This document shows, one piece after another, positions 13,611 to 58,911 of a stretch of DNA of 64,000 nt. A program made the translations under genes and the position numbers. The notes below the pieces were generated by a model. It made no database searches, was not told the origin of the DNA, and worked only from the letters and a program-made list of their open reading frames with translations. The stretch spans positions 62,001 to 126,000 of IMG/VR virus record IMGVR_UViG_3300036781_000418; one strand, 5' to 3'. Numbering within the stretch: position 1 is the stretch's first letter; each line of letters opens with the position of its first letter.

Positions 13611-13982
13611 TCACTCGGCCTCGTTCTTGATCCACTCGAGTGCAAGTTTCAGCTCCTCAATGAAGAGCTCTCCAGCCTCTTCAGCGTTGCTAAAAACCTT
13701 GCCATCCAGCTTGTTAAAGTTGCCGTCCATCTTGTACCAGCTGACCCGTGCACCCACTCGTGTGTCACGTGTCAAATCGTAACACAACGAAATAAACGGC
13801 AGTGGTTCATAAGAATCATTCGATATTACCTCGACAACACCTTGATTGTCCTTTAGCTCGTAGGTAATGGTCTTGTGCTTGAGCATCTTTGCGCAGAGTG
13901 CGGTCGCCTGCTTGGCCACCAACCCCGCGTGAAACTTGGCTTCTTCAAAGCCGTCAGATTCAAATAGTTGAGCTACGTTCAT
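13611..13982 (-). CDS. Putative internal head protein, CTS-like leader family (123 aa)
   Basis: MNVAQLFES leader. Clear paralog of 13979-14329 (LV.KQA.....KM.KH..I.YEL.D..G, WY..DG, EEAG.LF...LKLA). Confidence 0.7.
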   Translation of the reverse strand: MNVAQLFESDGFEEAKFHAGLVAKQATALCAKMLKHKTITYELKDNQGVVEVISNDSYEPLPFISLCYDLTRDTRVGARVSWYKMDGNFNKLDGKVFSNAEEAGELFIEELKLALEWIKNEAE

Positions 13983-14329
13983 GGCTTAGACTGCTCGTTG
14001 TACTCGCTCACCGCCAACTTTAGCTTACGCATGAAAAGCTGACCGGCCTCCTCAACGGTGTCGACAGTTTCAAGGTCGATCTCACCGTCCTGATACCATC
14101 CTACTTCAAACTCAGTGCCTGCGGAATGGTCGTCGCGTTTGATGAACGGCACCTCGTGCTCAACACCTTGCACCAATGTGACTGCGAGGCCTTCTTGGTC
14201 GTCAAGTTCGTAGTTGATCTCTTCATGCTTAATCATCTTTTCCAGATAGACGTTGGCCTGCTTTACGATGAGCTGCATGTGCAGGTGATCGTCTTCGTAG
14301 TCGCTTTCAAGTAGGTGTCGTAGTTTCAT
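13979..14329 (-). CDS. Putative internal head protein, CTS-like leader family (116 aa)
   Basis: MKLRHLLES leader, 4-nt coupled overlaps with both neighbours, paralog of 13611-13982. Confidence 0.7.
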   Translation of the reverse strand: MKLRHLLESDYEDDHLHMQLIVKQANVYLEKMIKHEEINYELDDQEGLAVTLVQGVEHEVPFIKRDDHSAGTEFEVGWYQDGEIDLETVDTVEEAGQLFMRKLKLAVSEYNEQSKP

Positions 14330-14685
14330 TGTTTATCCCCGTCATTGTCGCGCACCTTGTTAACGCGCTCGATCTCGTCCTTAAACACCTTCCAAGCGTC
14401 CGATGATTTTACGAACAGCTGTTCGTCCCAGCCAGTCTTACGCACAATTACCATGTAGTGGCGACCCATGTGGTCGCGCTCGTTCCACGCCATGATTGGG
14501 TAGTCAGAACCGATACGCGGCTGGATGTTAATGACGTGTGCCGTACCTGAGCCCATGTACATAATCCGGTACTCTGGAGCCGGTGCCAGCTTCTTCGCCT
14601 TGATGAGGAACAGCTGCATGTCCTCATCAGCATGTTCTGGAACGGTGCTGTCGACTTCGTCTTCCAAGAGTGAGTTAAGCTTCAT
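14326..14685 (-). CDS. Putative internal head protein, CTS-like leader family (119 aa)
   Basis: MKLNSLLED leader and DEDMQLF helix shared with the family. Translationally coupled. Confidence 0.7.
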   Translation of the reverse strand: MKLNSLLEDEVDSTVPEHADEDMQLFLIKAKKLAPAPEYRIMYMGSGTAHVINIQPRIGSDYPIMAWNERDHMGRHYMVIVRKTGWDEQLFVKSSDAWKVFKDEIERVNKVRDNDGDKQ

Positions 14686-16935: not shown

Positions 16936-16947
16936 GGTTAGCTTTCA

Positions 16948-19900
16948 TCACTTCACCTGCCGAATGATCGTTGGGGTCAGGGCCTCGACCACGTCGATGT
17001 CCGCCACGGTAGCGGCCGACTGGAGGATCTCGTCGCCACCACACTGGACCGTGAACATGTCACCGAACGAGTTGGTGGAGTACAGCGGCACCAGCACAAC
17101 CGAGGCGATCTCCGTTGGAAGACGCTGGTGCATCAAGGAGATGAGCTCGGTAGCGTAGAACGTCTCGCCAAAGTCCCAGTTACTGATCTCAAAGTACGTG
17201 TTGATGACGTTCAGCAGCTCCTCCTTGACGCGCTCGTTCGTCAAGGACGCTCCAGAGGAGCGTACCACCTTGAACTTAGCGCGGAGCTGAGGCTCAGCTA
17301 GCTGACCAAACATCAGGCGCAGGGAACCAGGGTGGAACACCACCGTGTCGGCCAGCATCTTGTTGGTAAGCAGGTAACCGTATGAGTTGCGCAGCTCCAG
17401 TGGAGTCGGCGGCGTTGGCTTCGTCGTGCTCAACCCACGGACGAACGCGATCATGGAGTCGTAGTAACCTTGGGTCACCACGTAGGCGTCGTGGATGTTC
17501 GTCGACGACGGGTCGATAATGTTGTTGAACGGGGTAAAGTGCTGCCACATGAACGTCAAGCCATCGTCCGTGTTTGGCCCAGGCATCTTCAAGCGACGTC
17601 CCCAAAGGTTGGAGATGTCGGAGAAGGAGCCGTCGTTGGCGAACGACGTGACCGGCTGTCCACCTGAATCCTGAGGAATCGATGGGTACGTGACGGTTGG
17701 ATCACTCAACGCGAAGTATTCGTAGTTGCCCTCGCCAAACGTCTCGAACTGTAGGAGCCGGTCAGGGATCAAGTCACCGGACGAGTCCTCCTGCAGCATG
17801 TCGGACGGTACCACCGAGAGCTGGTTAAAGTCTGGAATGCCCGATGAGTCCTTCACCGCACCAACCACGTCGTAGATCTGCGACTTAGTTAGGTAGGAGT
17901 AGTTTGGGGCGACACCGTACTGGTTGCCAGGCAGGACCTTGATGTTGTCGAAGACGCGCTTCTTCGTTTCGTTGTCGAGGATCTGCTCAGCGTCGTTGTA
18001 CCAGAACTTCGTGGTCGGTGATTCGACGATCAGCGCCAAGTCACGGTAGTTGATCTCGTAGCCAATGACGTTGTTGGACGGTGCTTGGCGCAGCTTGCGA
18101 ATCAAAATGATCCATGAGTGCTGCTTCTGGGACACGTCCGTGTTGTTCAAGTTGAACAGCTGGTCGGCAAACGGTGGCAGGGTAGTGGTTGTATAGTCTG
18201 GGAGCTGGGAGGCGCCCGACAGAATCTCCCACCAGCCGTTCAAGTTGACCGTTGGGCGGCCACTAAACGTGCGTTGGGTCAGGGTACCGTCGATCGCTGG
18301 GTCCATGTCAGAGGCCGTGTCCAGCACAAACGCGTCGCCTGGCTCAAAGGCGGCACCGCCCGTCGTCTGGTTGACCGTGGCGAACATGATCGAGGACGTG
18401 AAGCCGGCCGGTTGAATGTAGATCGCCGAGCCGATGGTGTCCTTGCCCGTCGAGATGGTTCCACGCAGGTTGGAGCGAACCGAAAGGGTCTCGCCGTCGG
18501 CGCCTACTTGAATCGTCCAAACTTCACCCACGTAGTAGGTTGGGCGGACCGCTGGGTCGGCTTCCTGCTTGACGGGCACCTTGTTGTGGACGGTAATCGT
18601 GCCTTCACCAACGCCGGCCGTGTACGGGTTGTAGCGCAGACCGAAGTAGTCTTGGTCAGCGATTGGCTGCAGACCGGAACCGACGTCGCCTGGTGGGTAC
18701 TTGTTGATGCCGTCGATCGTGCGTGGGACGGCGGCCGCGTAGATGCGTGAGTCGTCCTTTGGGTTCAGCGTTGGGTCTGGAATGACGGCCCAAATCTTGT
18801 TGTCTGAGCCTTCGATGAACTCGAGTGGCTCGCCGTACCAGTGACGGTCGATCAGGCCTTGGATAGCCGTCTTCTCCTTCAACGAACCGTCTGGGACGGA
18901 GCCGTCAAGGATGTTGACGAACGCGTTGTTTAGAGTGCGCCACAGTCCAGCACGGTTGTCCTCGATGAAGACACGACGTGGTGGAGCGACGACCCCTTGG
19001 AGCAGTGGATCCGCCGCACCGATGTGAACCAGCATGTTGATCACGCCGGTGTCGTTGAGCAGCGGCTCGATGACGTTGTCGATCAACGCCTGCCCAGTGG
19101 TCGACACGGTGGTCGAGTTCAGGGTGAGGTTGTAGCGCATGGACAGGTCGTCACCGAACAGCTTGACGTTCTCGTACTGTCCCGACGCATCGTTCCAGTC
19201 AATGTACTTTGGCTGACCCGCAAACGTGCGGTTGACCGTCTTCAGACGGAGAATTGACGGGTCGCGTAGTGGGAAGGTGTTGTAGTCCTGCCCATTGACC
19301 ATGCGGTTCTGGGCGTAGTACGTGGCTGGAGCGGACTGACGGATGTGCTCGATCGTCTCCGAACCGGCGCCGTTCTGCAGGGTCGTCGTCAGGGAAAACG
19401 TGAGGGCGCACGTCTCGGTGTTACCGTTGGTCGCGGTGTAGGTGAACGACAATGGTTGGTTGACCACCTTGTTCTTCTGCACGACGACGGCCTTGTTGAT
19501 GGACTGCCGCATCCAGAACCGGAAGGAACCCTGTGGGGCCTCCGAGAAGTCACCGTCACCGAACAGGATGGCGATCTGGTCGTTCTCCAGCGTGTCCACT
19601 TCGTACTTAAAGCGGGTGGAGCGGTCGTCGTTGAAGATGAGGTTCTGCTCGGCCACCGTATCAACTTCGGTCCAACGTTCGGCGATCTCACCTTGGTCGT
19701 TCAGGCGCTGCACCCAGACGTCGGTTGAGTTGACGTTGTTTGGCAGGAACTCAAGGCGGCGATTCGGCAGCTTGTCCGTGATGTCGTACTCGATGCGGGT
19801 GATGGTGCCCTGCTTCGTGAAAGCCAGGAAGCCGGTGTAGTCGGAGCCGTCGCCCACTCCGTCGTTCGCGTAGATGATGGTAAACGGTGAGTTCAAGTCT

Positions 19901-20574
19901 GGCTCACGTTCAAACGGGCCGTTCTCGTCCAAGTCGGCCGGCACGACCTCCATCGGCACGGAGTCCAACCCCGTGTTGGCCGTGTAGGCGTACACCCCGT
20001 TGATGAAGGAGTTGTCGTCCGCGTTCAGGGAGTAGAGGTCCATGACCACGTCGTTCACCTGGAACGACTTCTGTGGCTGACCGTAGCGGGTTGTCAAAAC
20101 ACGGTTCACGACGAGCGTGAACTGCTCCTTCCAGTTAGGGTTGTTTGGGTCGTTCCAGTTGATGACCTGCCCGGAGATATCGACGCCACGGGAGTCGATC
20201 ACACGCTCCGTCGTGGAGATTGAGGAGAACTTTACCAGGCCACGGGACGCGATGTTCCGAGTCGCCTTGTACGAGATCAGCTTCGCCAGGCGCAGGATGG
20301 ACTGCTTCCGCTGGGCGGTTGTGATGAAGTTTTCATGGGCCACCATGTCCACACGGTAGGCCAGCTGTTCCGCGACGTAGGCAAACGACTCGATGTACGC
20401 GATCAGCTCGGAGCTGGCGATCAAGTCGTTGAAGACCTCGGGGTAGTAGATCCGGAGGTAGTCGATCAACGACGCCCGAATGGTGTCGAAGTCAAAGGAG
20501 GTGAAGTTGACCTGGCTGAAGGCCTGGTATACGGCCTCCCAGCTTTCAGCCGAGTTGGTGTTCCGGAACGTCAT
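16948..20574 (-). CDS. gp6: Baseplate wedge subunit, gp6-like (~1208 aa)
   Basis: FTSFDFDTIRASLIDYL...FNDLIASSELIAYIE, ENFITTAQRKQSILRLAKLISY and ETIEHIRQSAP..Y.AQNRMVNGQDY are gp6 hallmarks. Start moved to MTFRNT at 20574, downstream of TAAATA at 20601. Confidence 0.9.
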   Translation of the reverse strand: MTFRNTNSAESWEAVYQAFSQVNFTSFDFDTIRASLIDYLRIYYPEVFNDLIASSELIAYIESFAYVAEQLAYRVDMVAHENFITTAQRKQSILRLAKLISYKATRNIASRGLVKFSSISTTERVIDSRGVDISGQVINWNDPNNPNWKEQFTLVVNRVLTTRYGQPQKSFQVNDVVMDLYSLNADDNSFINGVYAYTANTGLDSVPMEVVPADLDENGPFEREPDLNSPFTIIYANDGVGDGSDYTGFLAFTKQGTITRIEYDITDKLPNRRLEFLPNNVNSTDVWVQRLNDQGEIAERWTEVDTVAEQNLIFNDDRSTRFKYEVDTLENDQIAILFGDGDFSEAPQGSFRFWMRQSINKAVVVQKNKVVNQPLSFTYTATNGNTETCALTFSLTTTLQNGAGSETIEHIRQSAPATYYAQNRMVNGQDYNTFPLRDPSILRLKTVNRTFAGQPKYIDWNDASGQYENVKLFGDDLSMRYNLTLNSTTVSTTGQALIDNVIEPLLNDTGVINMLVHIGAADPLLQGVVAPPRRVFIEDNRAGLWRTLNNAFVNILDGSVPDGSLKEKTAIQGLIDRHWYGEPLEFIEGSDNKIWAVIPDPTLNPKDDSRIYAAAVPRTIDGINKYPPGDVGSGLQPIADQDYFGLRYNPYTAGVGEGTITVHNKVPVKQEADPAVRPTYYVGEVWTIQVGADGETLSVRSNLRGTISTGKDTIGSAIYIQPAGFTSSIMFATVNQTTGGAAFEPGDAFVLDTASDMDPAIDGTLTQRTFSGRPTVNLNGWWEILSGASQLPDYTTTTLPPFADQLFNLNNTDVSQKQHSWIILIRKLRQAPSNNVIGYEINYRDLALIVESPTTKFWYNDAEQILDNETKKRVFDNIKVLPGNQYGVAPNYSYLTKSQIYDVVGAVKDSSGIPDFNQLSVVPSDMLQEDSSGDLIPDRLLQFETFGEGNYEYFALSDPTVTYPSIPQDSGGQPVTSFANDGSFSDISNLWGRRLKMPGPNTDDGLTFMWQHFTPFNNIIDPSSTNIHDAYVVTQGYYDSMIAFVRGLSTTKPTPPTPLELRNSYGYLLTNKMLADTVVFHPGSLRLMFGQLAEPQLRAKFKVVRSSGASLTNERVKEELLNVINTYFEISNWDFGETFYATELISLMHQRLPTEIASVVLVPLYSTNSFGDMFTVQCGGDEILQSAATVADIDVVEALTPTIIRQVK

Positions 20575-20600
20575 GTAGTGGATCGAGGTTAGCGATCCAC

Positions 20601-20606
20601 TATTTA
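20601..20606 (-). promoter_or_regulatory. Late promoter TAAATA
   Basis: Lies ~27 nt upstream of the gp6-like start. Confidence 0.7.
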
Positions 20607-20615
20607 GCCAGAACC

Positions 20616-21041
20616 CTACAGCTCGGCGGCTTGCTCCCTGGCGATCATGGCCGCGAACATCAACCAGGCGTACCGCCATTCCTGCTTCTCTGGACCAGTT
20701 GGGCGCTGTTCGTCGAACTTTCCTGGCTTACGCAGCTTGACCTTAGTCAGCGGCGGGTGCGGCCAGACTTTCGTCTGCTTCGTGACGACGGTGCCGATTT
20801 GATCGAACTCCACCAGCGAGTACCGGCGCATGCCCATGTCGGCCATACCCTTCAGGATCAAGTGGATGTCGTCGTTTGCCGCGCCTTGGTCGTCCTTGTG
20901 ATACTTCCGACTGGCGAAGCTGACGGCCGCGCAGGAGTACATGTAGCCCACACCAGTCACGTAATCAGGGTGGTAGAGGAACTCGTTGGCTGCCAACTCA
21001 AGAATGTCGGCCATTCGGTGAAGGTCAGTTGCAGTCGTCAT
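20616..21041 (-). CDS. Hypothetical protein, paralog 3 of the RYAWLxFAAMIAREQA family
   Basis: Probable start MTTATDLHRMADILE. Ends WRYAWLMFAAMIAREQAAEL. Confidence 0.75.
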   Translation of the reverse strand: MTTATDLHRMADILELAANEFLYHPDYVTGVGYMYSCAAVSFASRKYHKDDQGAANDDIHLILKGMADMGMRRYSLVEFDQIGTVVTKQTKVWPHPPLTKVKLRKPGKFDEQRPTGPEKQEWRYAWLMFAAMIAREQAAEL

Positions 21042-21405
21042 GGCACTTCGCTTGTTCTCGCGCAATCATCGCGGCGAACGTCAGCCAGGCGTAGCGAGCC
21101 TGCTGCTGAATATCGGTGTTAAAGCTGAGGCTTGTGAACTCCATAACGGAGTGCGGATTGACGCCCATCGCCTTTAGACCAGCTATGATCTGCTTGAAGT
21201 CACGCTTTGCGCGCTTAATCCGATTGACGTACTCACGCGTTTGGCCACTGATTCCTACAAGTTCATAGTGGATGTAGAACGGCTCAATGTTGTGGCGGAC
21301 GCCGACGGCGTCTCGGATCGCGTGGCAGCTGTAGTAAAGGGAGCTAGGCCTCAGGTACTTGTCGGCCGCCTCTTCAAGAATATCCGCAATTTCGTGTAGG
21401 TTCAT
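21025..21405 (-). CDS. Hypothetical protein, paralog 2 of the RYAWLxFAAMIAREQA family (126 aa)
   Basis: ADILEEAA...YSCHAI...QQARYAWLTFAAMIAREQA. Confidence 0.75.
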   Translation of the reverse strand: MNLHEIADILEEAADKYLRPSSLYYSCHAIRDAVGVRHNIEPFYIHYELVGISGQTREYVNRIKRAKRDFKQIIAGLKAMGVNPHSVMEFTSLSFNTDIQQQARYAWLTFAAMIAREQAKCHDDCN

Positions 21406-21818
21406 TTGGCCTCCGCTTGTTCTCGTGCGATCATCGCTGCGAACATCAGCCAGGCGTAGCGAGCCTGCTGACGACTGGATATGTTTGGAAATTCACTGAA
21501 CTCTGAGAACGAGTTTACCTTCAAGCCCATGGCCGTCAGACCTTTTTGAATAGCCTTCAGCGTGCGACGCGCGTTCATCACCGTGGTAACCTGTTCGCAA
21601 AACAATGGAAAACCCTTGTACAGCAGGTACTTGACTTCAATCTTGTATCGAGCGGCGATGGCATGTTGAATTGCCAAGCAGCTGTACACCGCCTTCTTGG
21701 AGGCGCCGTTGGTGGGCGCCAAGTGGTTGTTCGCGGCGTCTTCAAGAATCTCAGCGTACGCCGACAGCCTGATGTAGCCCATTAGCCGTTTATGCTGCGC
21801 TTCGGTCAACTTTCCCAT
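21402..21818 (-). CDS. Hypothetical protein, paralog 1 of the RYAWLxFAAMIAREQA family (138 aa)
   Basis: AEILEDAA...YSCLAI...QQARYAWLMFAAMIAREQA. Confidence 0.75.
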   Translation of the reverse strand: MGKLTEAQHKRLMGYIRLSAYAEILEDAANNHLAPTNGASKKAVYSCLAIQHAIAARYKIEVKYLLYKGFPLFCEQVTTVMNARRTLKAIQKGLTAMGLKVNSFSEFSEFPNISSRQQARYAWLMFAAMIAREQAEAK

Positions 21819-23389: not shown

Positions 23390-23847
23390 TTGACTTCCTT
23401 GTGATCGGCGTCCACGGAGATCATGCGCATGATCTCCTCGTGGGTCGCCACAACCGTGCCGCTCTTCTGGTTGTTGAACGGCACGAAGGCTCCCGAACGG
23501 CGACGGTCAGTCTTCACTCGAGCGCGTGAGTTGGCCGCCTGCAGGGCGATGTTCAAGTACTGAGCGGCGACTTCAGCGTTGCGAGCCGCGTACCGAGGTT
23601 CAATCACCTCAAGGTAGGACGTCTGTAGTTCGTACGCGCCCATGGCCTGCTCGAACACGGTGTCGATCTTCTTGTCAATCTCCACGTCCTCGGCGTCCTT
23701 CTCCTCAGGTGCGGCCTGAGTGGCAAGGGCGGTGGACGGTTCGTTCACGATCTGTTCCGGCATGGCCGAGTCGTAGGTGTCGTCAAACTCGTTGGCGTCA
23801 ACGTCGAAGATCTGGTCAAGTGGTGAGTCGAATTTACGTGGGGTCAT
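23386..23847 (-). CDS. Probable terminase small subunit-like protein (153 aa)
   Basis: Acidic N-terminus, helical core with IEPRYAARNAEVAAQYL.IALQA and a short C-terminal helix. Coupled to the gp4-like gene. Assignment is by recalled resemblance only. Confidence 0.5.
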   Translation of the reverse strand: MTPRKFDSPLDQIFDVDANEFDDTYDSAMPEQIVNEPSTALATQAAPEEKDAEDVEIDKKIDTVFEQAMGAYELQTSYLEVIEPRYAARNAEVAAQYLNIALQAANSRARVKTDRRRSGAFVPFNNQKSGTVVATHEEIMRMISVDADHKEVK

Positions 23848-24359
23848 TTTGCGGTTGCGTCCTTGGTGTAGACCATGCTGGTCGGCGTCTGGCCTTGCTT
23901 ACGGAAGATCGACTTCTCGGTGATGACGCGGAACGTCGCACCTTGCGAGGCGGCGAACATGGCGGCGGCCTCCCACTTGGCCTGGTTAACGGCCACGATC
24001 ATTCGGTTCTGCGGGGTTGGGTTACGGCCCAGCACGGTTTCATGGTACGGCTTGATCTCAACGATCTCCTTCCGCACCGCACCTGAGGTGTCACGGTAGA
24101 TGACGATGAAGTCTGGGTAGTAACGGTGCACCAGGTTGTCAACTGGACTCTTATATGGAATTGCTAGTTCTTCAGACGCCCACTGAATCACCGACGGGTG
24201 CATGTCCAACCACTTCAGAAACGTCACCTCCCACGAGCTCCGGAAGAAGATCGCGTTGGGGTTGCCTACGTACTTGGCCGGATTCTTTGGAATGAACCGA
24301 CCCTTCATCGTCGAGCGTGTCTTGGTGTTGGCGCTGCGCGCCTGTCGTCCGTTCGCCAT
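23844..24359 (-). CDS. gp4: Head completion nuclease, gp4-like (171 aa)
   Basis: KGRFIPKNPAKYVG.P..I.FRSSWE..F..W.D....WASEEL.IPY.SP.D...HRYYPDF...EIKP is the T4 gp4/TnsA-like signature. Confidence 0.92.
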   Translation of the reverse strand: MANGRQARSANTKTRSTMKGRFIPKNPAKYVGNPNAIFFRSSWEVTFLKWLDMHPSVIQWASEELAIPYKSPVDNLVHRYYPDFIVIYRDTSGAVRKEIVEIKPYHETVLGRNPTPQNRMIVAVNQAKWEAAAMFAASQGATFRVITEKSIFRKQGQTPTSMVYTKDATAK

Positions 24360-25751: not shown

Positions 25752-26248
25752 GGGGTCACCACCTTGAACTTGTTCTTGACGTGCGTCTCGTAGATGGCGA
25801 GCACCTTGCGCAGGTAGACCAGGAACTTTGATGGATCGTCGAACGCCTTCGACCAGGTGTTTTCAAACGTCTTCGTGACCGCGGAGTTAAGCCCCTGGGT
25901 TGCATGGGTCTTGTGATCCACTTCGTTCAGCAGGTCATACTCGATCTGGTACATCGTTGTCCATGGACCACGCCCTACGGATGCACGTCCACCATACGCG
26001 CTTAGGTTCATGTTGATGTACACGTTGTCGTAGTCTTCGTAGTCGTCCGTTTTAAACGGAACACGGAAGAGCGGGGAGGTGTACAGCTGCTTGTCGCCGC
26101 CGGAGTCGAGTCCATTGGGTTCTTCATGGATAACCTTGCCAGCCGTAAACCCAGCACGCTCCAACACCTTCCCAAACAGGTGAAAGTTTGTAAGCGCGTC
26201 GTCTTGGTCGTAGCCCTTGTTATGGGTCTCAAAAAGGGCGAGCTTCAT
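25748..26248 (-). CDS. Putative internal head protein, array B member (166 aa)
   Basis: MKLALFET...YDQDDALTNFHLFGKVLERAGF. Confidence 0.72.
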   Translation of the reverse strand: MKLALFETHNKGYDQDDALTNFHLFGKVLERAGFTAGKVIHEEPNGLDSGGDKQLYTSPLFRVPFKTDDYEDYDNVYINMNLSAYGGRASVGRGPWTTMYQIEYDLLNEVDHKTHATQGLNSAVTKTFENTWSKAFDDPSKFLVYLRKVLAIYETHVKNKFKVVTP

Positions 26249-27572: not shown

Positions 27573-27589
27573 CAAGGGATTAGAGTTGT

Positions 27590-45398: not shown

Positions 45399-46508
45399 TC
45401 AGGCTTTCCAATTTTCATTTCGTGAACCCTTCGTGCCAGCACGAGTCCAAGGCTCGTGGGCCGGTACGATGGTTGGTGTATCTGGACAAGTGGCCGAGGC
45501 GGCTTGTGGTCCGTTCAAGTGAATGTTTGATCCGGTCTGCAGGATGTTGCTAGCCGCGAGAATGTTGAAGTCGGCGTTCGATTCAAGGTTAACGCCGTTT
45601 CCGGCAGCATGGAGCGCACCACACGCCGCAAGCTTCACATCAGCACTGGCCTGCAGGTTGATGTTGCCACCGGCCTGCAGTGAGAAGTCCTTCGCCACCG
45701 TGATGTTCAATGAACCGTCCGTGGTGATCGCCATGTCGTCGCCGGCGTAGATGTGCACGCGACCGTCTTGGTCAAGCTCAACCCACGCTGCACCTCGGGC
45801 CGTGGAGATGTAGACCCGTTCGTTTGCGTCGTCCAACAGGATCTGGTGGCCAGCTGCCGTGACGATTCGAGTGCGACCCGTCGTTGGGTTGTCCTGCATG
45901 ATAAGGGCATGACGACCAGGTGTCGTGAGCGAGTACGTCTGTGGGTCGTAGTTCGCCTTGCCACTGTCCAACGTTGGATCGACTACGTTCGTCTGGTAGC
46001 CCTCGTTGCCGTCCTTCTCAGTCTGGGCCTGCGCGACCTGGCGCTCGTAGACGCCACGAGTCATGGCCTCCGAGGCGGTGAGGTTGCCGTTGAACTGGGC
46101 TTGGAGGTTGGACGCCGCCGGCTCCAACGCCGACAGCACGTCCGTGACTGGTCCTGATTGATTACGGCCGTGTGGTAGCGAACGGTTGCCGTGGTCGCGC
46201 CAGATGGAGCCCATCAGCACGCGTCGGTTTGGATCTCCGTACAGAAACCCAACGATGACGACTGCGCCGGTCTTCGGTGGCAGCACGAGGCCGTAGCCCG
46301 TCAACCCTGAAGCGACGGCCGCAGTTGGACCAGCTGGATAGTCCCGAGTCTGACCACCAAGCTGGCTCATGTACTTTGCCCATGGCAGCTCCGCAACCTT
46401 GTATGAGTCGCCGTCAATGGCTGGCACCCACACCTTGACGCGGTTCATCTGCTGAGGATCGTTGGTGTCAACTACAACACCCTCTTCAAGGAACGGACGC
46501 GAGCTCAT
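45399..46508 (-). CDS. gp5: Baseplate central spike, gp5/VgrG-like OB fold plus beta-helix, no lysozyme (369 aa)
   Basis: GVVVDTNDP....RVKVW.P...LPWA OB fold, then TAAGHQILLDD, GAAWVELDQDG.VHI and beta-helix repeats ending NIHLNG...HEPW. Confidence 0.88.
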   Translation of the reverse strand: MSSRPFLEEGVVVDTNDPQQMNRVKVWVPAIDGDSYKVAELPWAKYMSQLGGQTRDYPAGPTAAVASGLTGYGLVLPPKTGAVVIVGFLYGDPNRRVLMGSIWRDHGNRSLPHGRNQSGPVTDVLSALEPAASNLQAQFNGNLTASEAMTRGVYERQVAQAQTEKDGNEGYQTNVVDPTLDSGKANYDPQTYSLTTPGRHALIMQDNPTTGRTRIVTAAGHQILLDDANERVYISTARGAAWVELDQDGRVHIYAGDDMAITTDGSLNITVAKDFSLQAGGNINLQASADVKLAACGALHAAGNGVNLESNADFNILAASNILQTGSNIHLNGPQAASATCPDTPTIVPAHEPWTRAGTKGSRNENWKA

Positions 46509-51343: not shown

Positions 51344-51826
51344 ATGACAGCAGTTGTTCCTAAGAAAACCGTCAAACCCGCCAAACGAGAAAAGTCCACG
51401 TCGACTAAAGGTCACTACGTCAAGAACGCCGACCTGCTGCCTGCCTTCCATGAGGCCAAGGCGCTGAACAAGCTGACGCCGAAGCTAGCTGAGATGCTCA
51501 TGAAGATCGCGGAGCGCTACTCGTACCATCCATGGTTTGTTGGCTTCTCCTACCGCGAGGACATGGTCGCGTTCGCCATCGTCAACCTCTGCGCTAACTG
51601 GCATAAGTTCAACCCTGAGAAGTCAAGCAACCCCTTCTCCTACTACACGACGGCCTGCTACCGCAGCTTCCAGGCCTACCTTGGTGACGAGCGCAAGGAG
51701 CGCGACGGCCGTGACAAGCTGCTGATTGAAGCCGGGGCCAACCCATCGTTTAACTACCAGATGCGCGGTGGCAAAAGCTCGGACGACCATGCCTTTTCAG
51801 GCGGAGGAGGTGGAGACCATGAGTAA
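51344..51826 (+). CDS. gp55: Late-transcription sigma factor (160 aa)
   Basis: HYVKNADL, IAE.YS..P.F..FSYREDMV..A..N......FNPEKS.NPFSYYT.ACY..F.....ERK signature. Upstream of gp47/gp46 as in T4. Confidence 0.93.
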   Translation: MTAVVPKKTVKPAKREKSTSTKGHYVKNADLLPAFHEAKALNKLTPKLAEMLMKIAERYSYHPWFVGFSYREDMVAFAIVNLCANWHKFNPEKSSNPFSYYTTACYRSFQAYLGDERKERDGRDKLLIEAGANPSFNYQMRGGKSSDDHAFSGGGGGDHE

Positions 51827-52412: not shown

Positions 52413-53489
52413 ATGATGGTATCCAAATTTAACGACTTTGCCAACGCCCGAGTTCTCATGTTCACCGACATTCACGTCGGTGCTCGTGGCAACTCGGAGC
52501 AGCACCTCAATGACTGCATCCAGTACATCGAGTGGTTCATCGAGCTGGCCAAGCGCGAGCGTGCCACCCACATCGCCTTCCTCGGCGACTACTTCGAAAA
52601 CCGCAGCTCGATCAACGTCCAGTCCCTGAACGTTGGCACGCAGATCATGCGTCGCCTAAACTCGCTCGGCATCCCAATCATCTTCATGGTTGGAAACCAC
52701 GATCTGTACCACCGCAACACGCGTAAGGTCTTTTCAACGGACTCCTACAAGGACCTTGAGAACGTGCTGGTTGTCTCCGAACCGATGGAGCTGACGAAGG
52801 ACGTGTTAGTCGCCCCGTACCTCTTCAAGCAAGAGTACCTCGACATGGCCGACCAGATCAACTCCCACAAGTACGTCTTCGGTCACTTTGAGTTTCGTGG
52901 GTTCGTGGTGACCGGTGACACCAAGGTCCTCGAGCACGGCCCCGATGCAAGCGCCTTCACCGGTCCGAAGTTCATCTTCTCGGGCCACTTCCATAAGCGA
53001 CAGGTGGCCGGTAACGTCATCTACATCGGCAACACGTTCCCCACGAACTTTGGCGACGCTTGGGACACTGAACGCGGTGCTTCTCTGCTCGACATGTCAT
53101 CCGACGACGTCCTGTTCTTCGACTACCCCGACGCCCCACTGTTCTACAAACTTCGCATGACCGAGCTGTTGGCTAACCAGTCGCTCTCCTTCAAGGAGGG
53201 CGGTCGAGTTCGGTGTACCTTGGACCTTGATGTTGGCTACACTGACGTGCAGACGATCCGCGAGGAGATGATTGAGGCCTACAAGCTCCGTGAATTCCTC
53301 ATTGAAGAGGACTTCATCTCCAAGAAGGAGCTGATCGCCGAGGGCCTCGACGTTGACTCACTCGCCGTCGACCTATCCATGCTGCACAATACGATCGGCA
53401 CCCTGATCCGTGAAGGCGTGCAGCAGTCCCCAACGATCGACCCTGACCTGTTGATCAGCATCTTCGACGAACTTAAACTGGAAAAGTAA
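52413..53489 (+). CDS. gp47: Recombination nuclease subunit, Mre11/SbcD-like (358 aa)
   Basis: FTDIHVG, FLGDYFENR, VGNHD, FGHFE and FSGHFHK metallophosphoesterase motifs. Confidence 0.93.
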   Translation: MMVSKFNDFANARVLMFTDIHVGARGNSEQHLNDCIQYIEWFIELAKRERATHIAFLGDYFENRSSINVQSLNVGTQIMRRLNSLGIPIIFMVGNHDLYHRNTRKVFSTDSYKDLENVLVVSEPMELTKDVLVAPYLFKQEYLDMADQINSHKYVFGHFEFRGFVVTGDTKVLEHGPDASAFTGPKFIFSGHFHKRQVAGNVIYIGNTFPTNFGDAWDTERGASLLDMSSDDVLFFDYPDAPLFYKLRMTELLANQSLSFKEGGRVRCTLDLDVGYTDVQTIREEMIEAYKLREFLIEEDFISKKELIAEGLDVDSLAVDLSMLHNTIGTLIREGVQQSPTIDPDLLISIFDELKLEK

Positions 53490-53490
53490 C

Positions 53491-53808
53491 ATGGCCTTTT
53501 GGAAAACTGCCCCCGTCTCGGAAGAGCCTGAAATTACCCTGTACGACTGGAAGGTCTTCGAGCTTAACGACGGCTCGCGTCACTTCGTCGGCACCAACGG
53601 CGCGCGCGGCTCCGGCCGAGTCAGTTCGTCGATCCAAACATTTGACCCAACCACGATGAGTGGCGTGACGCGCTCTGGGCGCGTCTACAAGCTGGTTGGT
53701 GAAAGTGGGGATTCAATTAACGGTCTCTACACCTGGACAGGTTGGTGCCATGTTAACCGTGTCGATGACTGCATCGACGTATCAAACTTTATCGGAGAAA
53801 CTAAATGA
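53491..53808 (+). CDS. Hypothetical protein (105 aa)
   Basis: RHFVG....GRVSS.I..FD.....GVTRSGRVY.L.G pattern. Coupled within the operon. Confidence 0.7.
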   Translation: MAFWKTAPVSEEPEITLYDWKVFELNDGSRHFVGTNGARGSGRVSSSIQTFDPTTMSGVTRSGRVYKLVGESGDSINGLYTWTGWCHVNRVDDCIDVSNFIGETK

Positions 53809-54347
53809 CCTGTATCGTCGGACTTGAATACCACGGCAAGGTGCACATTGGTGGAGATCTACAAGGCACTGGCTGGAACAACAAGATCAAGCACGACCAG
53901 CCTAAGGTGTTCGTACGCAACGGCATCGCCTTCGGCTACACGACCTCCTACCGGTTCGGTCAGCTGCTTGAACATGTCCTGCCCGATCCAATCGTGCCGG
54001 CTAATCCAGATGAAATCTACCCATGGTTGATCAAGGTTCTGGTGCCGAGCATCAAGGACACGCTGAAGGACGCTGGCTATGAAGGTGGTGGCAACTGCCT
54101 AATCGGTGTAAAGAGCACCTTGTGGGAGCTGCAGAACGACTACTCAATCCTTCGTTCCGTGAACGGTTACGCGTCGGTTGGTTCTGGATATGAGTACGCC
54201 AACGGCGCGATGTACGCCATGTTGACCAAGCTGAAAGGACAGGCGTTGACGGACGAAGGCGCTCAAGACCTCGTTGAGCTGGCCATCGAGGCGGCCGGCA
54301 CGTTCTCACCGTCGGTGGGTGTTGACTCCGTGATCGTGACGGTGTGA
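53805..54347 (+). CDS. HslV/proteasome-beta-like Ntn hydrolase (180 aa)
   Basis: MTCIVG start (N-terminal Thr), GGD, K, FG..., ASVGSG..YA.GAM..., A.EAA..F...VG: Ntn-fold pattern. Confidence 0.78.
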   Translation: MTCIVGLEYHGKVHIGGDLQGTGWNNKIKHDQPKVFVRNGIAFGYTTSYRFGQLLEHVLPDPIVPANPDEIYPWLIKVLVPSIKDTLKDAGYEGGGNCLIGVKSTLWELQNDYSILRSVNGYASVGSGYEYANGAMYAMLTKLKGQALTDEGAQDLVELAIEAAGTFSPSVGVDSVIVTV

Positions 54348-56101
54348 TGACGACGAACCTTATTGGACTTAACACCATGAGGTTCCTGGAGCTTACCCTC
54401 CAGAACTTCATGAGCTTCGGTAACCGTCGTACGGTGTTTGACCTGTCAACTCCTGGAACCTACCTGATCAAGGGTGAGAACAAGGACGTGGGTGGCTCCA
54501 ACGGTTCAGGCAAGACGTCGGTGATCAACGGCATCTGCTACGCCCTGTTCAACCAACCATTTGACGACATCACGCTGAACCGCCTGATCAACACGACGAA
54601 CGCCTCGAAGAACACGTTGATGGAGGTCTCGCTGTCCTTCACCAAGGGCGTGGATGAGTACCTCATCACACGTACACGTGGCGCCGAGTTTATCACGACC
54701 ATCTTGAAGAACGGCGTTGACGTCACCCCTGGTAAGGGCGTCACGGAGTGTGACGCGTTGATCTCTGAGATCGTGGGTATGACACATGAGCTGTTCACCC
54801 GCACCGTCGTCTTCTCGGGCAACAACCAGGCTTTCCTCTCACTGCCAATTTCCCAACAGCGCTCGATCATTGAGGAGCTCTTCAACATCAAGATGCTCTC
54901 GGACCTGGCCATGAAGCTGCGTCCGCTGATCAAACAAACTGAGACCGACATCTCCGTTCAGCAGGCCGTCGTTCAACAGCAGCAGGTCGCCGTCGACCTG
55001 CACCGTAAACACCTCGTTGACGCGGCCACGCGGGTCAAGCGCTGGGACATGGACCGCAACTTGAGCATGTCCACGATCGAGAAGACGCTGGCCTCCCTTG
55101 AGGGCGTGGACTTTGAGTTTGAACGTGTGCTGCATGATGAAGTTAAGAACTACACGCAGAACCGAGTCCACGTTCAACAACAGGTCAACGACGCCACCCG
55201 CATCAAGCGCGAGCTGACGAAGAAGGTCGAGAATCTGTTGGGTGAAGAGCGTCACCTGCTCGACGCCAAGTGCCCGTACTGCAAGCAGAAGTACCACGAC
55301 ACGTCCGCGAAGCTGGCCGAGATCAACGCTGAGCTGGACAAGCTGAACGACTCATTGGTGACCGTCGAGGACATGGAGCTTCGGGCAACCGAGGACTTGA
55401 AGAAGGTCGACGAGCTGTTGGCCGACCGCCGCAGTCGCATCAAGCACCCCGACTTCGACAAGCTGCTCAAGGCCAAGTCCGACGCGGCCCTACTGCAGGA
55501 GAAGCTGGATGACCTGAAGATCCAGACCAACCCACACCACGAGGCCTTCGATAAGCTAAACAGTGAAGGCGAGCCGATCATCGAAACGTCCAAGGTCGAC
55601 GTGTTGAAGAAGCGGCTGGAACATCAGCAGCTCCTACTTAAGCTGCTCGTCAACAAGGACTCGTTCGTCCGTCATCGAATCTTGAACAAGTCGCTGCCGA
55701 TTCTCAATGAACGGATGAACTACTACACCAAGCTGTTGGGTCTCCCACACGCCGTAAAGTTCCAGGCTGACATGTCCTGCACGGTGACTGAGTTCGGGCG
55801 TGAGCTTGACTTTGGTAACCTGTCGACCGGAGAGAAGAAGCGGGTGAACACGGCCATGAACTTCGCGTTCTCCGAGGTCCGGGCCCTGCTCCATGCCCGA
55901 GTCAACCTCATGCTGATCGACGAGATCGACGGTGGACTTGATCCTGAAGGGCTGGAGGCGGTCGTCAAGCAGGTGAAGTTGAAGTCTAGGGCCGATCACA
56001 TGACGATCTTCATGATCTCCCACCACCCATTGATCGACGGTCGACTAGATCGAACGATTTTGATCCGTAAGGAGCAGGGGTTCTCCTCGTTGGTAGAGTG
56101 A
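54344..56101 (+). CDS. gp46: Recombination ATPase, Rad50/SbcC-like (585 aa)
   Basis: NFMSFGN, Walker A GGSNGSGKT, coiled coil with a CPYC zinc hook, signature LSTGEKKR and Walker B LIDEIDGGLD. Confidence 0.95.
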   Translation: MMTTNLIGLNTMRFLELTLQNFMSFGNRRTVFDLSTPGTYLIKGENKDVGGSNGSGKTSVINGICYALFNQPFDDITLNRLINTTNASKNTLMEVSLSFTKGVDEYLITRTRGAEFITTILKNGVDVTPGKGVTECDALISEIVGMTHELFTRTVVFSGNNQAFLSLPISQQRSIIEELFNIKMLSDLAMKLRPLIKQTETDISVQQAVVQQQQVAVDLHRKHLVDAATRVKRWDMDRNLSMSTIEKTLASLEGVDFEFERVLHDEVKNYTQNRVHVQQQVNDATRIKRELTKKVENLLGEERHLLDAKCPYCKQKYHDTSAKLAEINAELDKLNDSLVTVEDMELRATEDLKKVDELLADRRSRIKHPDFDKLLKAKSDAALLQEKLDDLKIQTNPHHEAFDKLNSEGEPIIETSKVDVLKKRLEHQQLLLKLLVNKDSFVRHRILNKSLPILNERMNYYTKLLGLPHAVKFQADMSCTVTEFGRELDFGNLSTGEKKRVNTAMNFAFSEVRALLHARVNLMLIDEIDGGLDPEGLEAVVKQVKLKSRADHMTIFMISHHPLIDGRLDRTILIRKEQGFSSLVE

Positions 56102-56128
56102 TAAATAGGGGAGCAATGCTCCCCTATT
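56102..56128 (+). promoter_or_regulatory. Late promoter TAAATA overlapping an 11-bp hairpin
   Basis: TAAATA 56102-56107. Stem AATAGGGGAGC/GCTCCCCTATT, ATG at 56133. Confidence 0.68.
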
Positions 56129-56132
56129 CCAC

Positions 56133-56792
56133 ATGAAGCTCAACATCTTCGAGGCGCCGCCCTCCATCACCCGTAAGGTTCACCCGGACGCCATCAAGGG
56201 ACCCGCATGGATGAACAACATGGGGCTAACTGACCTCGCCGATCGATGGAAAAGCCGTACCAAGGAGGTGGACGGCGACGTGTTGATGGTCAATAACCAG
56301 CTGAAGAACCTTAAGGGCGGCCCGACGATCATCCATGGGACGTACAACGCCTCTAAGAACAAGTTGACGACGTTTGAAGGGTCCCCCACCTACGTGTCAA
56401 AGGACTTCATCGTCTACGGCAACCGGCTAACTGACTTTCTTGGACTGCACATTGAAGTCGGTGGTGACGTGGACCTTAGCAACAACCTGTTCAGGTCCCT
56501 GAAGGACATCCACAAGCACATCCTACACACCAAGACGCTGTCCATTGAGGACAACCCAATCGAGTCGCACGTGCTTGGGATCTTCAAGATCAAGGGCCTG
56601 GAAGCCCTCGAGTTCTTTCCGCAGAACGACGTAAACCCCAAAGGCATAACGGCTGACTACACAGAAACGGACAACAAGGTAGCCAAGATCGTCAACGACT
56701 GCTTCAAGGCTCACGGTGCGACGAACGTCGGCCTGTTGGAGTGCCAGGAACAGTTGATCGACGCCGGCTTCCATGAATACGCCCAGCTGTAA
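56133..56792 (+). CDS. Leucine-rich-repeat-like protein with CTS-like leader (219 aa)
   Basis: NQLKNLKGGP, NKLTTFEGSP, NRLTDF and NLFRSL repeats. MKLNIFEA start. C-terminus CQEQLIDAGFHEYAQL. Confidence 0.82.
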   Translation: MKLNIFEAPPSITRKVHPDAIKGPAWMNNMGLTDLADRWKSRTKEVDGDVLMVNNQLKNLKGGPTIIHGTYNASKNKLTTFEGSPTYVSKDFIVYGNRLTDFLGLHIEVGGDVDLSNNLFRSLKDIHKHILHTKTLSIEDNPIESHVLGIFKIKGLEALEFFPQNDVNPKGITADYTETDNKVAKIVNDCFKAHGATNVGLLECQEQLIDAGFHEYAQL

Positions 56793-56819
56793 ATACAACC
56801 TGAACCTACCAGGACCAAC

Positions 56820-57293
56820 ATGAAAACCTTGCTCGAACTTCTCTCCATGCTTCATGAGGCCGACGACGATACCACTGAGGATCAAGCGAAGACCGCCAAG
56901 GACCTCTGGGACGCCGGGTCACCTGAGGCCTACGTTTCGAAGATCCAATATGGCATCAAGAAGAACGACAACGGCACCTACCAGGTGACAACCGAGAACA
57001 ACGACCGCCGTCAGGTGATCAGCCAGTCGGTCTCGGCTTCCTACGTCTCGTCGAACTACGTCAAGATGTCCAAGGACGCGACCCCAGACGTCGAAGGCTA
57101 CGTGCTCTACCGTTCGGTCGGCCAGCAGGAAGCCATCCAGTACAAGGGTGATACAGCTCGAATCGACGTGGACGGTAAGACCGTCACCATGAACGCGGGC
57201 GACTACCTCATTAAGACGACGGACGACAACGGTAAGACCTTCTTCTCAGTTGAAACTGAGGACGCCTTCGAATCGGATTGGGAACAGAAGTGA
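56820..57293 (+). CDS. Hypothetical, possibly internal head protein (157 aa)
   Basis: MKTLLELLSMLHEA leader. TAAATA at 56790-56795 overlaps the upstream stop. Confidence 0.72.
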   Translation: MKTLLELLSMLHEADDDTTEDQAKTAKDLWDAGSPEAYVSKIQYGIKKNDNGTYQVTTENNDRRQVISQSVSASYVSSNYVKMSKDATPDVEGYVLYRSVGQQEAIQYKGDTARIDVDGKTVTMNAGDYLIKTTDDNGKTFFSVETEDAFESDWEQK

Positions 57294-58108
57294 AGATTCA
57301 TCAGCTGCATGAGATTTCGTCGGCCGACGAGTACCGCCAGACCACCGCGTATGGTGAGCCCGTGTTCATCATCGAACACTCCTCGACAGGGGACTTTAGC
57401 CCATTCAACAAGTTGATCGCGGTGGCGGCAAAGAAGGCTATGACGGGCGGCCACATGATGTTGAAGGTTGAGGTTAGGAACGCGCTTAAAAGCACCAAGG
57501 GCCTGTCGAAAGCCGACATCGGCGAGATCGACGTATCGAGAAACGACTTGATCTCAATGGAAGGTCTTGAGTGGTTTGACAGCTTCTTGAACATCTCCTC
57601 CAACAACTTGACGGAGCTACGCTGTGCGAAGACCATGCACGCGCTTGAGGTGGACAACAACGACCTGCACACCCTTACAGGTGGTCCAAAGCACTTGAGC
57701 GGACACTACTCAGCTTCTCACAACAAGCTGACTGACTTTTCCGGAGCACCGGTCGAGGTCTCGCAATCGCTGCACCTGTCGCACAACCAGATCTCGTCGT
57801 GGAGCGGCGTGAGCGGTATGCATATTCAGGACGACCTTGACCTAACCGGTAACAAGCTGAGCTCCATGCGCGGTGTTGATAAGGTCCTCAGCGGCTGTGA
57901 GGACCTTATCCTTACCGACAACCCACCGCCAAAGCACGTGTTGAACCTGTTCAACGTCGACGAGATCCGTCAGGGGGTTACCTTTGACGACGCCAAGCTG
58001 TCTAAGATCATCAACAAGCACCTGCACACCGGTGGTAAAGAAGGCATGCTCGACTGCCAAGAAGAGTTGATCGACGCTGGGTACTCACAGGAAGTCGCCT
58101 CCCTATGA
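57290..58108 (+). CDS. Leucine-rich-repeat-like protein with CTS-like leader (272 aa)
   Basis: GTG start (MKIHQLHEI) overlapping the upstream TGA. Several xxNxLxxLxGxP repeats. C-terminus CQEELIDAGYSQEVASL. Confidence 0.82.
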   Translation: MKIHQLHEISSADEYRQTTAYGEPVFIIEHSSTGDFSPFNKLIAVAAKKAMTGGHMMLKVEVRNALKSTKGLSKADIGEIDVSRNDLISMEGLEWFDSFLNISSNNLTELRCAKTMHALEVDNNDLHTLTGGPKHLSGHYSASHNKLTDFSGAPVEVSQSLHLSHNQISSWSGVSGMHIQDDLDLTGNKLSSMRGVDKVLSGCEDLILTDNPPPKHVLNLFNVDEIRQGVTFDDAKLSKIINKHLHTGGKEGMLDCQEELIDAGYSQEVASL

Positions 58109-58911
58109 AGCTACTTCAGGCGCTGTGTGAAGATACTCGAAAGATGAAGATGAAGGATGGGTCGTCCTACCGCATCGTTGAAAGCCCAAACACGCGTACC
58201 ATCTACATCGAAGAAACCGAGACAGGTGACCTAACGCCGTTCCATGGTCAATGGGAGCATATGCGCGAGGGCTTTGAGCACATGATTAAAATCAGTATTA
58301 CCTACGGTAGAATTGGCGGCTTCAACAGCTTCCACGGACTGCCAGCCGAGATCTGTGAGCACGCTGAGTTTAAGTTGGCGGGCAATGACTACATGGACAA
58401 GCTTCAAGGCTGGCCTAGTGGTGGTGAACCATACAGCTTCACGATTGAAAACGCCGCCCTCTCTACCTTTGAAGGTTTTCCAGACAAGTTTGGACACGAT
58501 CTTTCAGTTGAAAACGTTCCCATTAAGTCGTTCAAGGGCTTCCCATCTAACGTTGGCTATTCCTGCAACCTACATGATCTTGACGTAGTTGACTTCACCG
58601 GTGCTACTGGATCTACTGGGCGCAACGTTGACCTTCGCCGTTGTCATGAACTAAAGTCGTTCCGTGGCATTGACAAGCTGTTCAGCGGTGGTTTGGCAAG
58701 CACCTTGTCGATTGATAAGGTGCGTTCAATGAAGCATATCCTGCACGTCATGAACGTTCCAAATCTCCGATTTGTCAGCTTCTCTGACAACACACCCTTG
58801 TCACTACTCATCAACGAACACCTCGATGCCGGTCACGGCAAGGCGGGCGTTGTTCACCTTCAAAACGCCCTGCTCGATGCGGGGTATGACGAAGAGTTCG
58901 CTAGCCTTTAA
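58105..58911 (+). CDS. Leucine-rich-repeat-like protein with CTS-like leader (268 aa)
   Basis: FNSFHGLP, LSTFEGFP, IKSFKGFP and LKSFRGI repeats. C-terminus LQNALLDAGYDEEFASL. Confidence 0.8.
   Translation: MKLLQALCEDTRKMKMKDGSSYRIVESPNTRTIYIEETETGDLTPFHGQWEHMREGFEHMIKISITYGRIGGFNSFHGLPAEICEHAEFKLAGNDYMDKLQGWPSGGEPYSFTIENAALSTFEGFPDKFGHDLSVENVPIKSFKGFPSNVGYSCNLHDLDVVDFTGATGSTGRNVDLRRCHELKSFRGIDKLFSGGLASTLSIDKVRSMKHILHVMNVPNLRFVSFSDNTPLSLLINEHLDAGHGKAGVVHLQNALLDAGYDEEFASL

Follow-up and report, generated by a model that had tools for sequence, protein, structure and literature searches.

A short N-terminal leader resembling the T4 capsid targeting sequence on dissimilar proteins of an uncultured jumbo phage

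Within a window of 64,000 nucleotides (nt) of DNA from the IMG/VR virus record IMGVR_UViG_3300036781_000418 (bases 62001–126000 of the 342,591-bp contig; positions given below are window positions unless marked as genome positions), we analysed a short N-terminal leader, usually ending at a glutamate, which a first-pass annotation of the sequence had pointed out on about 22 proteins and compared with the leaders of the T4 internal proteins. We find the leader on about 51 open reading frames (ORFs) of the genome and conclude that most copies are probably propeptides that direct proteins into the capsid and are processed by the prohead protease, as a shortened version, specific to this lineage, of the T4 capsid targeting sequence (CTS). 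That a T4-like leader is cut after its Glu by this protease had already been claimed, and the claim passed all of the in silico tests, with the qualifications that the leader is a shortened variant and that the proteins are in part related to one another. The further proposal, that most leader proteins are injected effectors, is more tentative, falling a little short of an even chance, and the label ‘effector’ is itself a guess; some of the proteins may instead be parts of the prohead core that are degraded in the manner of T4 gp67 and gp68.

The genome, a single contig of 57% GC with direct terminal repeats (IMG/VR), belongs to a jumbo myovirus that is related to T4 and falls within the RsoM2USA/XacN1 clade. 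The nearest described phages by capsid protein are the Ralstonia phage RsoM2USA (52% identity), the Stenotrophomonas phages CM1/RAS14 and the Xanthomonas phage XacN1 (45%), followed by Rak2-like jumbo phages. A 12-kb part of the window, compared by megablast with the phages in GenBank, matched nothing, relatives being detected at the protein level only, and a search with the tail sheath retrieved 414 related IMG/VR stretches, many on contigs of 230–360 kb. The sequence itself is present in one run only, of DNA from a soil metagenome; a search for RNA runs brought up no other.

The leader and the proteins that carry it

Each of the 21 leaders listed by the first-pass annotation belongs to a real ORF, of 106–571 amino acids (aa), and begins at the first start codon usable in it; a frameshifted case that it also reported was looked for and not found. 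The motif is present across the region 13611–58911 to which it had been assigned, but is not restricted to it; the leader ORFs of the whole genome, 9,936 aa in total, lie mostly in tandem arrays at genome 11–14, 75–78, 84–98, 118–121 and 134–140 kb, with further arrays at 209–215, 255–258, 269–274 and 335–338 kb. The strict pattern M[KRN][LIVF]x1-3[LI]xE matches 39 of 404 called N-termini compared with 2 of 1,956 internal methionines, and shuffled N-terminal peptides gave a mean of 0.8 matches, with a maximum of 5, in 1,000 trials. Six-frame translation yields 47 matches, of which 42 begin ORFs that are 70 aa or longer and 34 are the first ATG after a stop, and the back-translated DNA pattern for MK[LF]xxLxE has 22 copies, against none for the reversed control. 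The excess of leaders is not due to chance.

The consensus is M-K-L-[D/N]-[Q/H]-L-[L/F/H]-E, with the Glu at residue 8 in 35 of the 51 leaders. Among these 35, Lys occupies position 2 in 30, Leu position 3 in 26 and Leu position 6 in 33, while position 7 is L, F or H and positions 4 and 5 favour D/N and Q/H; sequence conservation stops at the leader Glu, and the residues most common directly after it are A, S, E, D and G. Synonymous codons vary freely at the conserved positions (L6: CTA 11, CTC 8, CTG 8, CTT 3 and TTG 3; E8: GAA 24 and GAG 11), showing that the constraint acts on the peptide rather than on the DNA. The motif might otherwise have been a feature of the nucleotide sequence or of translation initiation, either a downstream enhancer or a by-product of ATGA overlaps that favour a second codon starting with A; many starts do overlap the upstream stop in this way, forcing codon 2 to be A-initial (K, N, R, T or I), and in bacteria at large Lys is a frequent second residue. 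We consider this barely credible, since the use of four or five synonymous Leu codons at L3 and L6 and of both Glu codons at E8 largely refutes it, the sequences upstream of the starts are not conserved, and relatives with a GC content of 41–45% retain the same peptide motif.

The proteins had been called unrelated, which is true of them only in part. When they were grouped by BLAST and iterative profile search, the leader having been removed beforehand, the 51 proteins fell into 31 groups, comprising families of 9, 7, 3, 3, 2 and 2 members and 25 singletons, and the 21 proteins of the window into 13 groups: a leucine-rich repeat (LRR) family of five, a small-protein family of four, one pair and ten singletons. 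The LRR family has receptor-L-like solenoids of 200–270 aa, whereas the small-protein family, with nine members genome-wide, has its four window members beside a gp4-like head-completion gene and found no usable match in an Atlas search. Almost all of the roughly 40 leader proteins compared with Pfam and PHROGs are unannotated. Nevertheless, different folds do occur, and the leader stands on ones as clearly distinct as an LRR solenoid, an amidoligase-like enzyme and a phage AAA+ ATPase. The last two also limit the earlier statement that recognised genes lack the leader, which holds for the sheath, tube, gp15, the gp6-, gp4- and gp5-like proteins, the gp46/47-like proteins and the gp55-like protein.

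The grouping bears directly on the possibility that the shared N-terminus was simply inherited, the proteins being diverged products of tandem duplication whose first helix belongs to the fold or serves a function outside the capsid. The families above, and the many tandem arrays of equal-sized ORFs, are what such an origin would produce, and adjacent singletons of the same length may be paralogues too diverged to detect. We nevertheless judge it highly unlikely: 25 singletons persist after iterative profile search, the leader occurs on different folds, conservation ends abruptly past the Glu, and the type of leader switches between phages on orthologous amidoligase-like bodies (see below). 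Structure prediction with AlphaFold2 (AF2) points the same way. In the model of the amidoligase-like protein (mean predicted local distance difference test score, pLDDT, of 86), residues 1–7 lie outside the confident fold with pLDDT below 50, and the N-terminus of the LRR model likewise has pLDDT below 50, although here the whole of the first 58 residues is uncertain and the case is correspondingly weaker; in both models, then, the leader is predicted not to be part of the fold.

Homologues in the nearest complete relative, the genome G001, were found for 5 of the 51 leader proteins, compared with 164 of 282 other genes. The leader genes are the fast-turnover part of the genome, like the internal-protein loci of the T-even phages.

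An observation on the LRR family concerns its other end: its members (for example locus L002:7888–8628, where L002:5661 is genome 131661, and those at window 56133–58911) have a conserved C-terminal helical region with the consensus ...CQEEL.DAG.DEYAKL, which is common to metagenomic homologues.

Prohead protease, head substrates and late transcription

The head module, with portal, protease, scaffold and major capsid protein genes, lies just beyond the window. The prohead protease is a member of the T4 gp21 family (Peptidase_S77, PF03420; E 5e-26, above the curated Pfam cut-off), encoded at genome 129743–130354, 3.7 kb past the window, between the portal and the scaffold and capsid genes. T4 gp21 cleaves after L/I-x-E (PMC9026906), and an [LI]xE ending at residue 5–12 is found in 49 of the 51 leaders.

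The head proteins carry the same motif in places where a protease of this specificity would be expected to act. The major capsid protein (genome 131661–132947; L002:5661–6947), which is related to T4 gp23, has [LI]xE ending at E7, E20, E35 and E44; the 384 aa that follow are free of the motif, where approximately 3.7 would be expected, the genome mean being 0.97 per 100 aa. The layout is the same in G001, in a second relative, G002, and in RsoM2USA, apart from one site at residue 159 of the RsoM2USA protein. Residue 17 of mature T4 gp23* aligns to residue 50 of this protein, which fits a capsid propeptide of approximately 35–44 residues. The scaffolds of the phage and its relatives contain 14–22 [LI]xE sites, the density here being 4.7 per 100 aa, a five-fold enrichment. 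By their sequence pattern, the capsid protein and scaffold look like substrates of the same L/I-x-E specificity. As an aside, the layout of [LI]xE in the capsid protein offers a route from sequence to the specificity of a prohead protease.

The N-terminus of the scaffold, MDEILQKLLE..., has the same L-x-x-L-L-E pattern as the leaders, which, speculatively, hints at how a leader might co-assemble with the core. The resemblance could also be taken to mean that the leader marks protease substrates that are mostly accessory core or assembly factors, similar to T4 gp67 and gp68, and that are lost before the DNA is packaged. T4 gp21 does process proteins of the core that do not stay in the head (PMC9026906), many leader proteins are small with acidic stretches after the leader, and several of their genes stand beside head genes. 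Core proteins, however, are conserved, yet few leader proteins have a homologue in G001; enzymes such as the amidoligase-like protein and the AAA+ ATPase, or LRR solenoids, are unlikely scaffolds; and internal [LI]xE is not enriched in the leader proteins (0.87 per 100 aa) in the way that it is in the scaffold. In addition, two leader-bearing proteins of RsoM2USA, described below, have been found in mature virions. A role in the core for most of the leader proteins is therefore unlikely, though less so than the other alternatives considered here.

The canonical T4 late promoter, TATAAATA, has no copies in the genome. The variant [C/G]TAAATA[C/G], on the other hand, has 74 copies genome-wide against 22 expected, and 42 of the 74 sit 25–39 nt before the start of an ORF, among the genes so preceded being those for the sheath, tube, gp15, neck, protease, scaffold and a 2,917-aa virion protein. 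Because a gp55-like sigma factor is encoded and the motif is so positioned, we think the variant most likely to be the late promoter of the clade. Units headed by the motif contain 20 of the 21 leader genes of the window. All those on the minus strand are in units that also contain wedge, tube-paralogue, gp4-like, gp15 or neck genes; besides the unit described in Table 1, motifs head leader-gene units at 27573, 27935, 30472, 35156 and 37885 on the minus strand and at 56789 on the plus strand, the last preceding three leader genes and leaving only 56133–56792 without a motif in its unit. Genome-wide, the median distance to the upstream motif is 1,316 nt for leader genes and 2,318 nt for others (p = 0.003, a value inflated by the tandem arrays).

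These observations suggest the following sequence of events, in which targeting, cleavage, retention in the head and ejection are all inferred. Leader genes would be transcribed late from [C/G]TAAATA[C/G], read by the gp55-type sigma factor, often in units common to tail, baseplate, neck and head genes. The short, amphipathic leader would then recruit each protein to the scaffolding core while the prohead is being assembled, where the gp21-type serine protease would cut after the Glu of the terminal [L/I]-x-E, the same enzyme trimming approximately 35–44 residues from the capsid protein and fragmenting the scaffold. The mature proteins would remain in the head, and most would leave it with the DNA at infection.

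Comparison with T4 and other phages

In T4, the 10-residue leader of IPIII, MKTYQEFIAE, suffices for encapsidation, residues 4 and 7 of the CTS being important for targeting, whereas processing depends on residues 8 and 10 (PMC9026906); an Asp at position 10 of the T4 leader prevents processing and leaves targeting intact. Features in common with the system of the T4 proteins IPI, IPII, IPIII and Alt are a short leader that stands at the very start of the protein and finishes with L/I-x-E, a protease of the gp21 (S77) family, a T4-type set of head, tail and late-transcription genes, and a collection of diverse, fast-evolving and otherwise dissimilar proteins that share only the leader. The main differences are that the typical leader here has 8 residues rather than 10, with Leu at 3, 6 and 7 instead of aromatic residues at 4 and 7, and that LRR solenoids, an amidoligase-like enzyme and an AAA+ ATPase are among the putative cargo.

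Homologues of the amidoligase-like protein connect the two forms of leader. Most of 57 metagenomic homologues start with MI[TS]FKQFLxE, followed by KAMN, in which F4, F7, L8 and E10 correspond to Y4, F7, I8 and E10 of T4, whereas MKLDVLFE, MKLATLLE or MILRDLFE stands in front of the same body in this phage and in a few others; across 39 aligned homologues, conservation of the leader Glu is 90% or higher. The type of leader thus appears to belong to the phage rather than to the protein family, and because the 8-mer is exchangeable with the 10-mer on orthologues, we assume that it has retained the ability to target. The AAA+ ATPase keeps a longer leader, MKINFASYLVE here and MYTSFKDYLVE in G001 (56% identity), and hybrid leaders, such as MKLTFKDFLKE, are found in G002. 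Hydrophobic or aromatic residues at positions 4 and 7, as in the T4 targeting signal, are present in the MITFKQFLxE of the relatives and very nearly so in the MKINFASYLVE of this phage.

Almost all of the sheath-anchored loci of relatives hold several leader-type ORFs. With uniform patterns applied to whole genomes, we counted 44 leader N-termini here, 24 in G001, 26 in G002 and 52 in RsoM2USA, compared with 7–9 matches at internal Met, so that the trait appears to be clade-wide and not peculiar to the window. Broader peptide patterns are needed for such counts: the strict MI[TS]FK... DNA pattern has 1–6 copies per genome in five relatives, and the exact MK[LF]xxLxE is rare (0–3 copies) in RsoM2USA, XacN1, RAS14 and Serratia phage BF. 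RsoM2USA and XacN1 share the head module and the layout of the capsid propeptide with this phage. The largest leader set of RsoM2USA, in contrast, consists of tandem proteins of approximately 190–205 aa starting MKLxEI or MRLxEI, which are absent here; this family (MG752970.1, ~171–214 kb; about 45 members by eye, 31 of which match the type C pattern), with its L-x-E at residues 3–5, has no PHROG match and is not mentioned in the paper on the phage.

Experimental support is indirect and comes from two proteins of RsoM2USA. ORF89 (28.6 kDa) has the leader MKTFKQFLSE and ORF132 (76.6 kDa) starts MKTFKQFL..., and both were identified through liquid chromatography coupled to tandem mass spectrometry (LC-MS/MS) of purified virions (PMC8504454); ORF89, together with the adjacent ORF88, is homologous to the LRR family of the window. 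A third virion protein, ORF257, has no clear leader. The presence of homologous leader-bearing proteins in virions also bears on whether the leader might be an N-terminal tag unconnected with capsid loading, for example one that keeps toxic enzymes inactive, times their degradation or localizes them elsewhere. The phage does encode an HslV-like peptidase (53805–54347), and the 8-residue form lacks the features of T4 positions 4 and 7, but the only protease matching L/I-x-E is of a kind that acts inside T4 proheads, and the leader genes are apparently co-transcribed with structural genes; we therefore regard a tag of this sort as very improbable.

Several results weigh against capsid targeting by a T4-like propeptide. 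The 8-mer, with D/N at position 4, L/F/H at position 7 and Leu at 3 and 6, does not have the aromatic targeting residues at 4 and 7, and its hydrophobic residues stand at P6/P3/P2 rather than at P7/P4/P3 as in T4, a shift of one. T4 tags few proteins, compared with about 51 ORFs in about 31 groups here, and, many leader genes being tandem paralogues, the N-terminal similarity is possibly inherited in part. Internal [LI]xE is depleted only weakly in leader proteins (observed/expected 0.89, against 1.14 for others); exposure to the protease would lead one to expect such depletion, but the effect is too slight to have been counted as support. The late promoter is assigned from a motif and its position. 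Finally, the RsoM2USA gel bands were assigned by predicted full-length mass, without N-termini (PMC8504454), and the lipase and chitinase reported from XacN1 virions have no leader at their annotated starts.

Other phages also load proteins into the head. In phages of the phiKZ type, the proteases use S/A/G-x-E, and the propeptides are longer and are not known to form a uniform N-terminal tag; these phages are not T4-core myoviruses. Here, by contrast, a uniform 8-mer serves as the tag, with Leu or Ile at P3. The protease gp175/gp245 of phiKZ, 201phi2-1 and SPN3US is a diverged gp21 homologue that processes inner-body or ejection proteins (PMC9026906), and the likeness to the present system lies in the dozens of head proteins cleaved after Glu and in a similar scale, at least 50 head proteins. 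A phiKZ-like inner-body system was rejected on the basis of the Leu/Ile at P3 and of structural genes that are T4-like (gp6, gp15, gp18, gp19, gp4, gp5 and gp55). The ejection proteins of P22 likewise travel in the head and enter the host along with the DNA. So, too, do the Dar proteins of P1, and some such packaged proteins are anti-restriction factors. To our knowledge, the proteins of the P1 Dar and P22 systems neither share a short cleavable leader nor undergo L/I-x-E processing of the gp21 type.

Workers on T4 have suggested that T4-like phages can use the CTS to fill their capsids with varied proteins (PMC9026906, PMC3012670), and we found no description of the present leaders in the RsoM2USA and XacN1 papers or the open-access literature. 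What is new is the scale, with about 51 ORFs here and 24–52 in each of three relatives, the remodelled 8-residue leader that dominates in this phage, and the near-T4 10-mer conserved throughout the clade in uncultured jumbo phages. It is conceivable, although we would not put it at even odds, that a large clade of uncultured, RsoM2USA/XacN1-like jumbo phages from soil and water uses a T4-derived N-terminal tag to load 25–50 fast-evolving, mostly unknown proteins per genome into the capsid. If so, tagged proteins would make up approximately 10% of the genes in these genomes, and this phage, with its remodelled tag, would have about twice the number of its nearest complete relatives (44 versus 24–26). 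The leader by itself would read out the injected ‘first-strike’ proteome, anti-defence factors for example, and label host-entering proteins even in phages that cannot be cultured, a class that includes the T4 anti-restriction protein IPI*; some 50 candidates here and 24–52 in each relative would be a source to be mined for anti-defence and host-takeover proteins. The T4 principle of expression, packaging and processing would extend to much larger capsids, and the occurrence of 10-residue T4-like and 8-residue leaders on orthologues is a natural experiment on what a targeting signal needs.

Other features of the window

The window holds a T4-type tail and baseplate module, and neck or adaptor proteins are also encoded in it. 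The features are collected in Table 1, in which 17 of the listed leader genes are on the minus strand and four on the plus strand.

Table 1. Leader genes, further genes and late-type motifs of the window (window positions).
Feature	Position	Strand	Remarks
Leader ORF, 123 aa	13611–13982	–	MNVAQLFE; paralogue of the 13979–14329 gene
Leader ORF, 116 aa	13979–14329	–	MKLRHLLE
Leader ORF, 119 aa	14326–14685	–	MKLNSLLE, then acidic linker
Leader ORF, 379 aa	14682–15821	–	Short ‘type C’ MKLDE/IL; L-x-E at residues 3–5; G001 homologue starts MLLQEIL
Leader ORF, 126 aa	15808–16188	–	MKLDIFE; start overlaps end of upstream gene
Leader ORF, 119 aa	16178–16537	–	MKLDQLHE
Leader ORF, 273 aa	21975–22796	–	MKINQLGE; LRR-solenoid family
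Leader ORF, 198 aa	22793–23389	–	MNLLQE; GTG start; LRR-solenoid family
Leader ORF, 157 aa	24359–24832	–	MKLHLFE; small-protein family; adjoins gp4-like head-completion gene
Leader ORF, 152 aa	24829–25287	–	MKLDLFE; small-protein family
Leader ORF, 155 aa	25284–25751	–	MKLTSLLE; small-protein family
Leader ORF, 166 aa	25748–26248	–	MKLALFE; small-protein family; no fold recognised
Leader ORF, 106 aa	27590–27910	–	MKLTQLLE; late-type motif 25 nt upstream
Leader ORF, 571 aa, phage AAA+ ATPase	28725–30440	–	MKINFASYLVE; late-type motif 32 nt upstream
Leader ORF, 394 aa, amidoligase-like (PF12224)	33164–34348	–	MKLDVLFE
Leader ORF, 113 aa	35131–35472	–	MRLTE/LYQE; L-x-E at residues 3–5; G001 orthologue starts MKLFELYQE
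Leader ORF, 177 aa	35474–36007	–	MKLDQLLE; start overlaps stop of upstream structural gene by 4 nt
Leader ORF, 219 aa	56133–56792	+	MKLNIFE; LRR-solenoid family; after gp46-like gene
Leader ORF, 157 aa	56820–57293	+	MKTLLE/LLSMLHE; two L-x-E sites; late-type motif 31 nt upstream
Leader ORF, 272 aa	57290–58108	+	MKIHQLHE; GTG start; LRR family, weak Pfam LRR matches
Leader ORF, 268 aa	58105–58911	+	MKLLQALCE; LRR family
Extra candidate, 71 aa	44326–44541	–	MTIEQLVE; absent from the earlier list
Extra candidate, 150 aa	41513–41965	–	MRLINLLQ; Q where cleavage Glu expected
Giant ORF, ~1,566 aa	up to 4099	–	Runs off window start
Giant ORF, 2,917 aa	4671–13424	–	Matches PHROGs of virion structural, head decoration and tail fibre proteins; late-type motif 33 nt upstream
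gp6-like baseplate wedge	16948–20679	–	No leader
gp4-like head-completion protein	23844–24359		No leader
430-aa ORF with tail-tube-like domain	26248–27540	–	phrog_4542, E 9e-11
GIY-YIG-type homing endonuclease	27888–28664	–	phrog_314, E 3e-41; own late-type motif
Tail tube	30539–31135		No leader
Tail sheath	31215–33062		No leader
gp15 sheath stabiliser	34345–35127		No leader
gp5-like hub	45399–46508		No leader
gp55-like late sigma factor	51344–51826	+	phrog_234, E 9e-30; no leader
gp47/gp46-like nuclease subunits	52413–56101		No leader
HslV-family peptidase	53805–54347	+	Between gp47-like and gp46-like nuclease genes
CTAAATA motif	20601–20607	–	Heads unit from baseplate wedge to six leader genes (16537 to 13611)
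Late-type motif starts	4964, 13457, 20607, 27573, 27935, 28702, 30472	–	
Late-type motif starts, further	31170, 33426, 35156, 37885, 39793, 42913, 62790	–	
Late-type motif starts	56789, 59106	+	

The second extra candidate, in which Gln replaces the Glu, could be an uncleavable variant or a coincidence. The motif at 20607 falls inside the longest ORF of the gp6-like wedge, the true start of which is probably near 20575 and not at 20679. At 20616–21818 on the minus strand are three tandem paralogues of approximately 126–149 aa that have an internal ‘ADILE(E/L)AA’ near the N-terminus and are without a proper leader. The 430-aa ORF is a second, enlarged paralogue of the tube protein and heads a unit of four leader genes and the gp4-like gene, while the GIY-YIG endonuclease is inserted inside the tail module, between a leader gene and the gene for the AAA+ ATPase.

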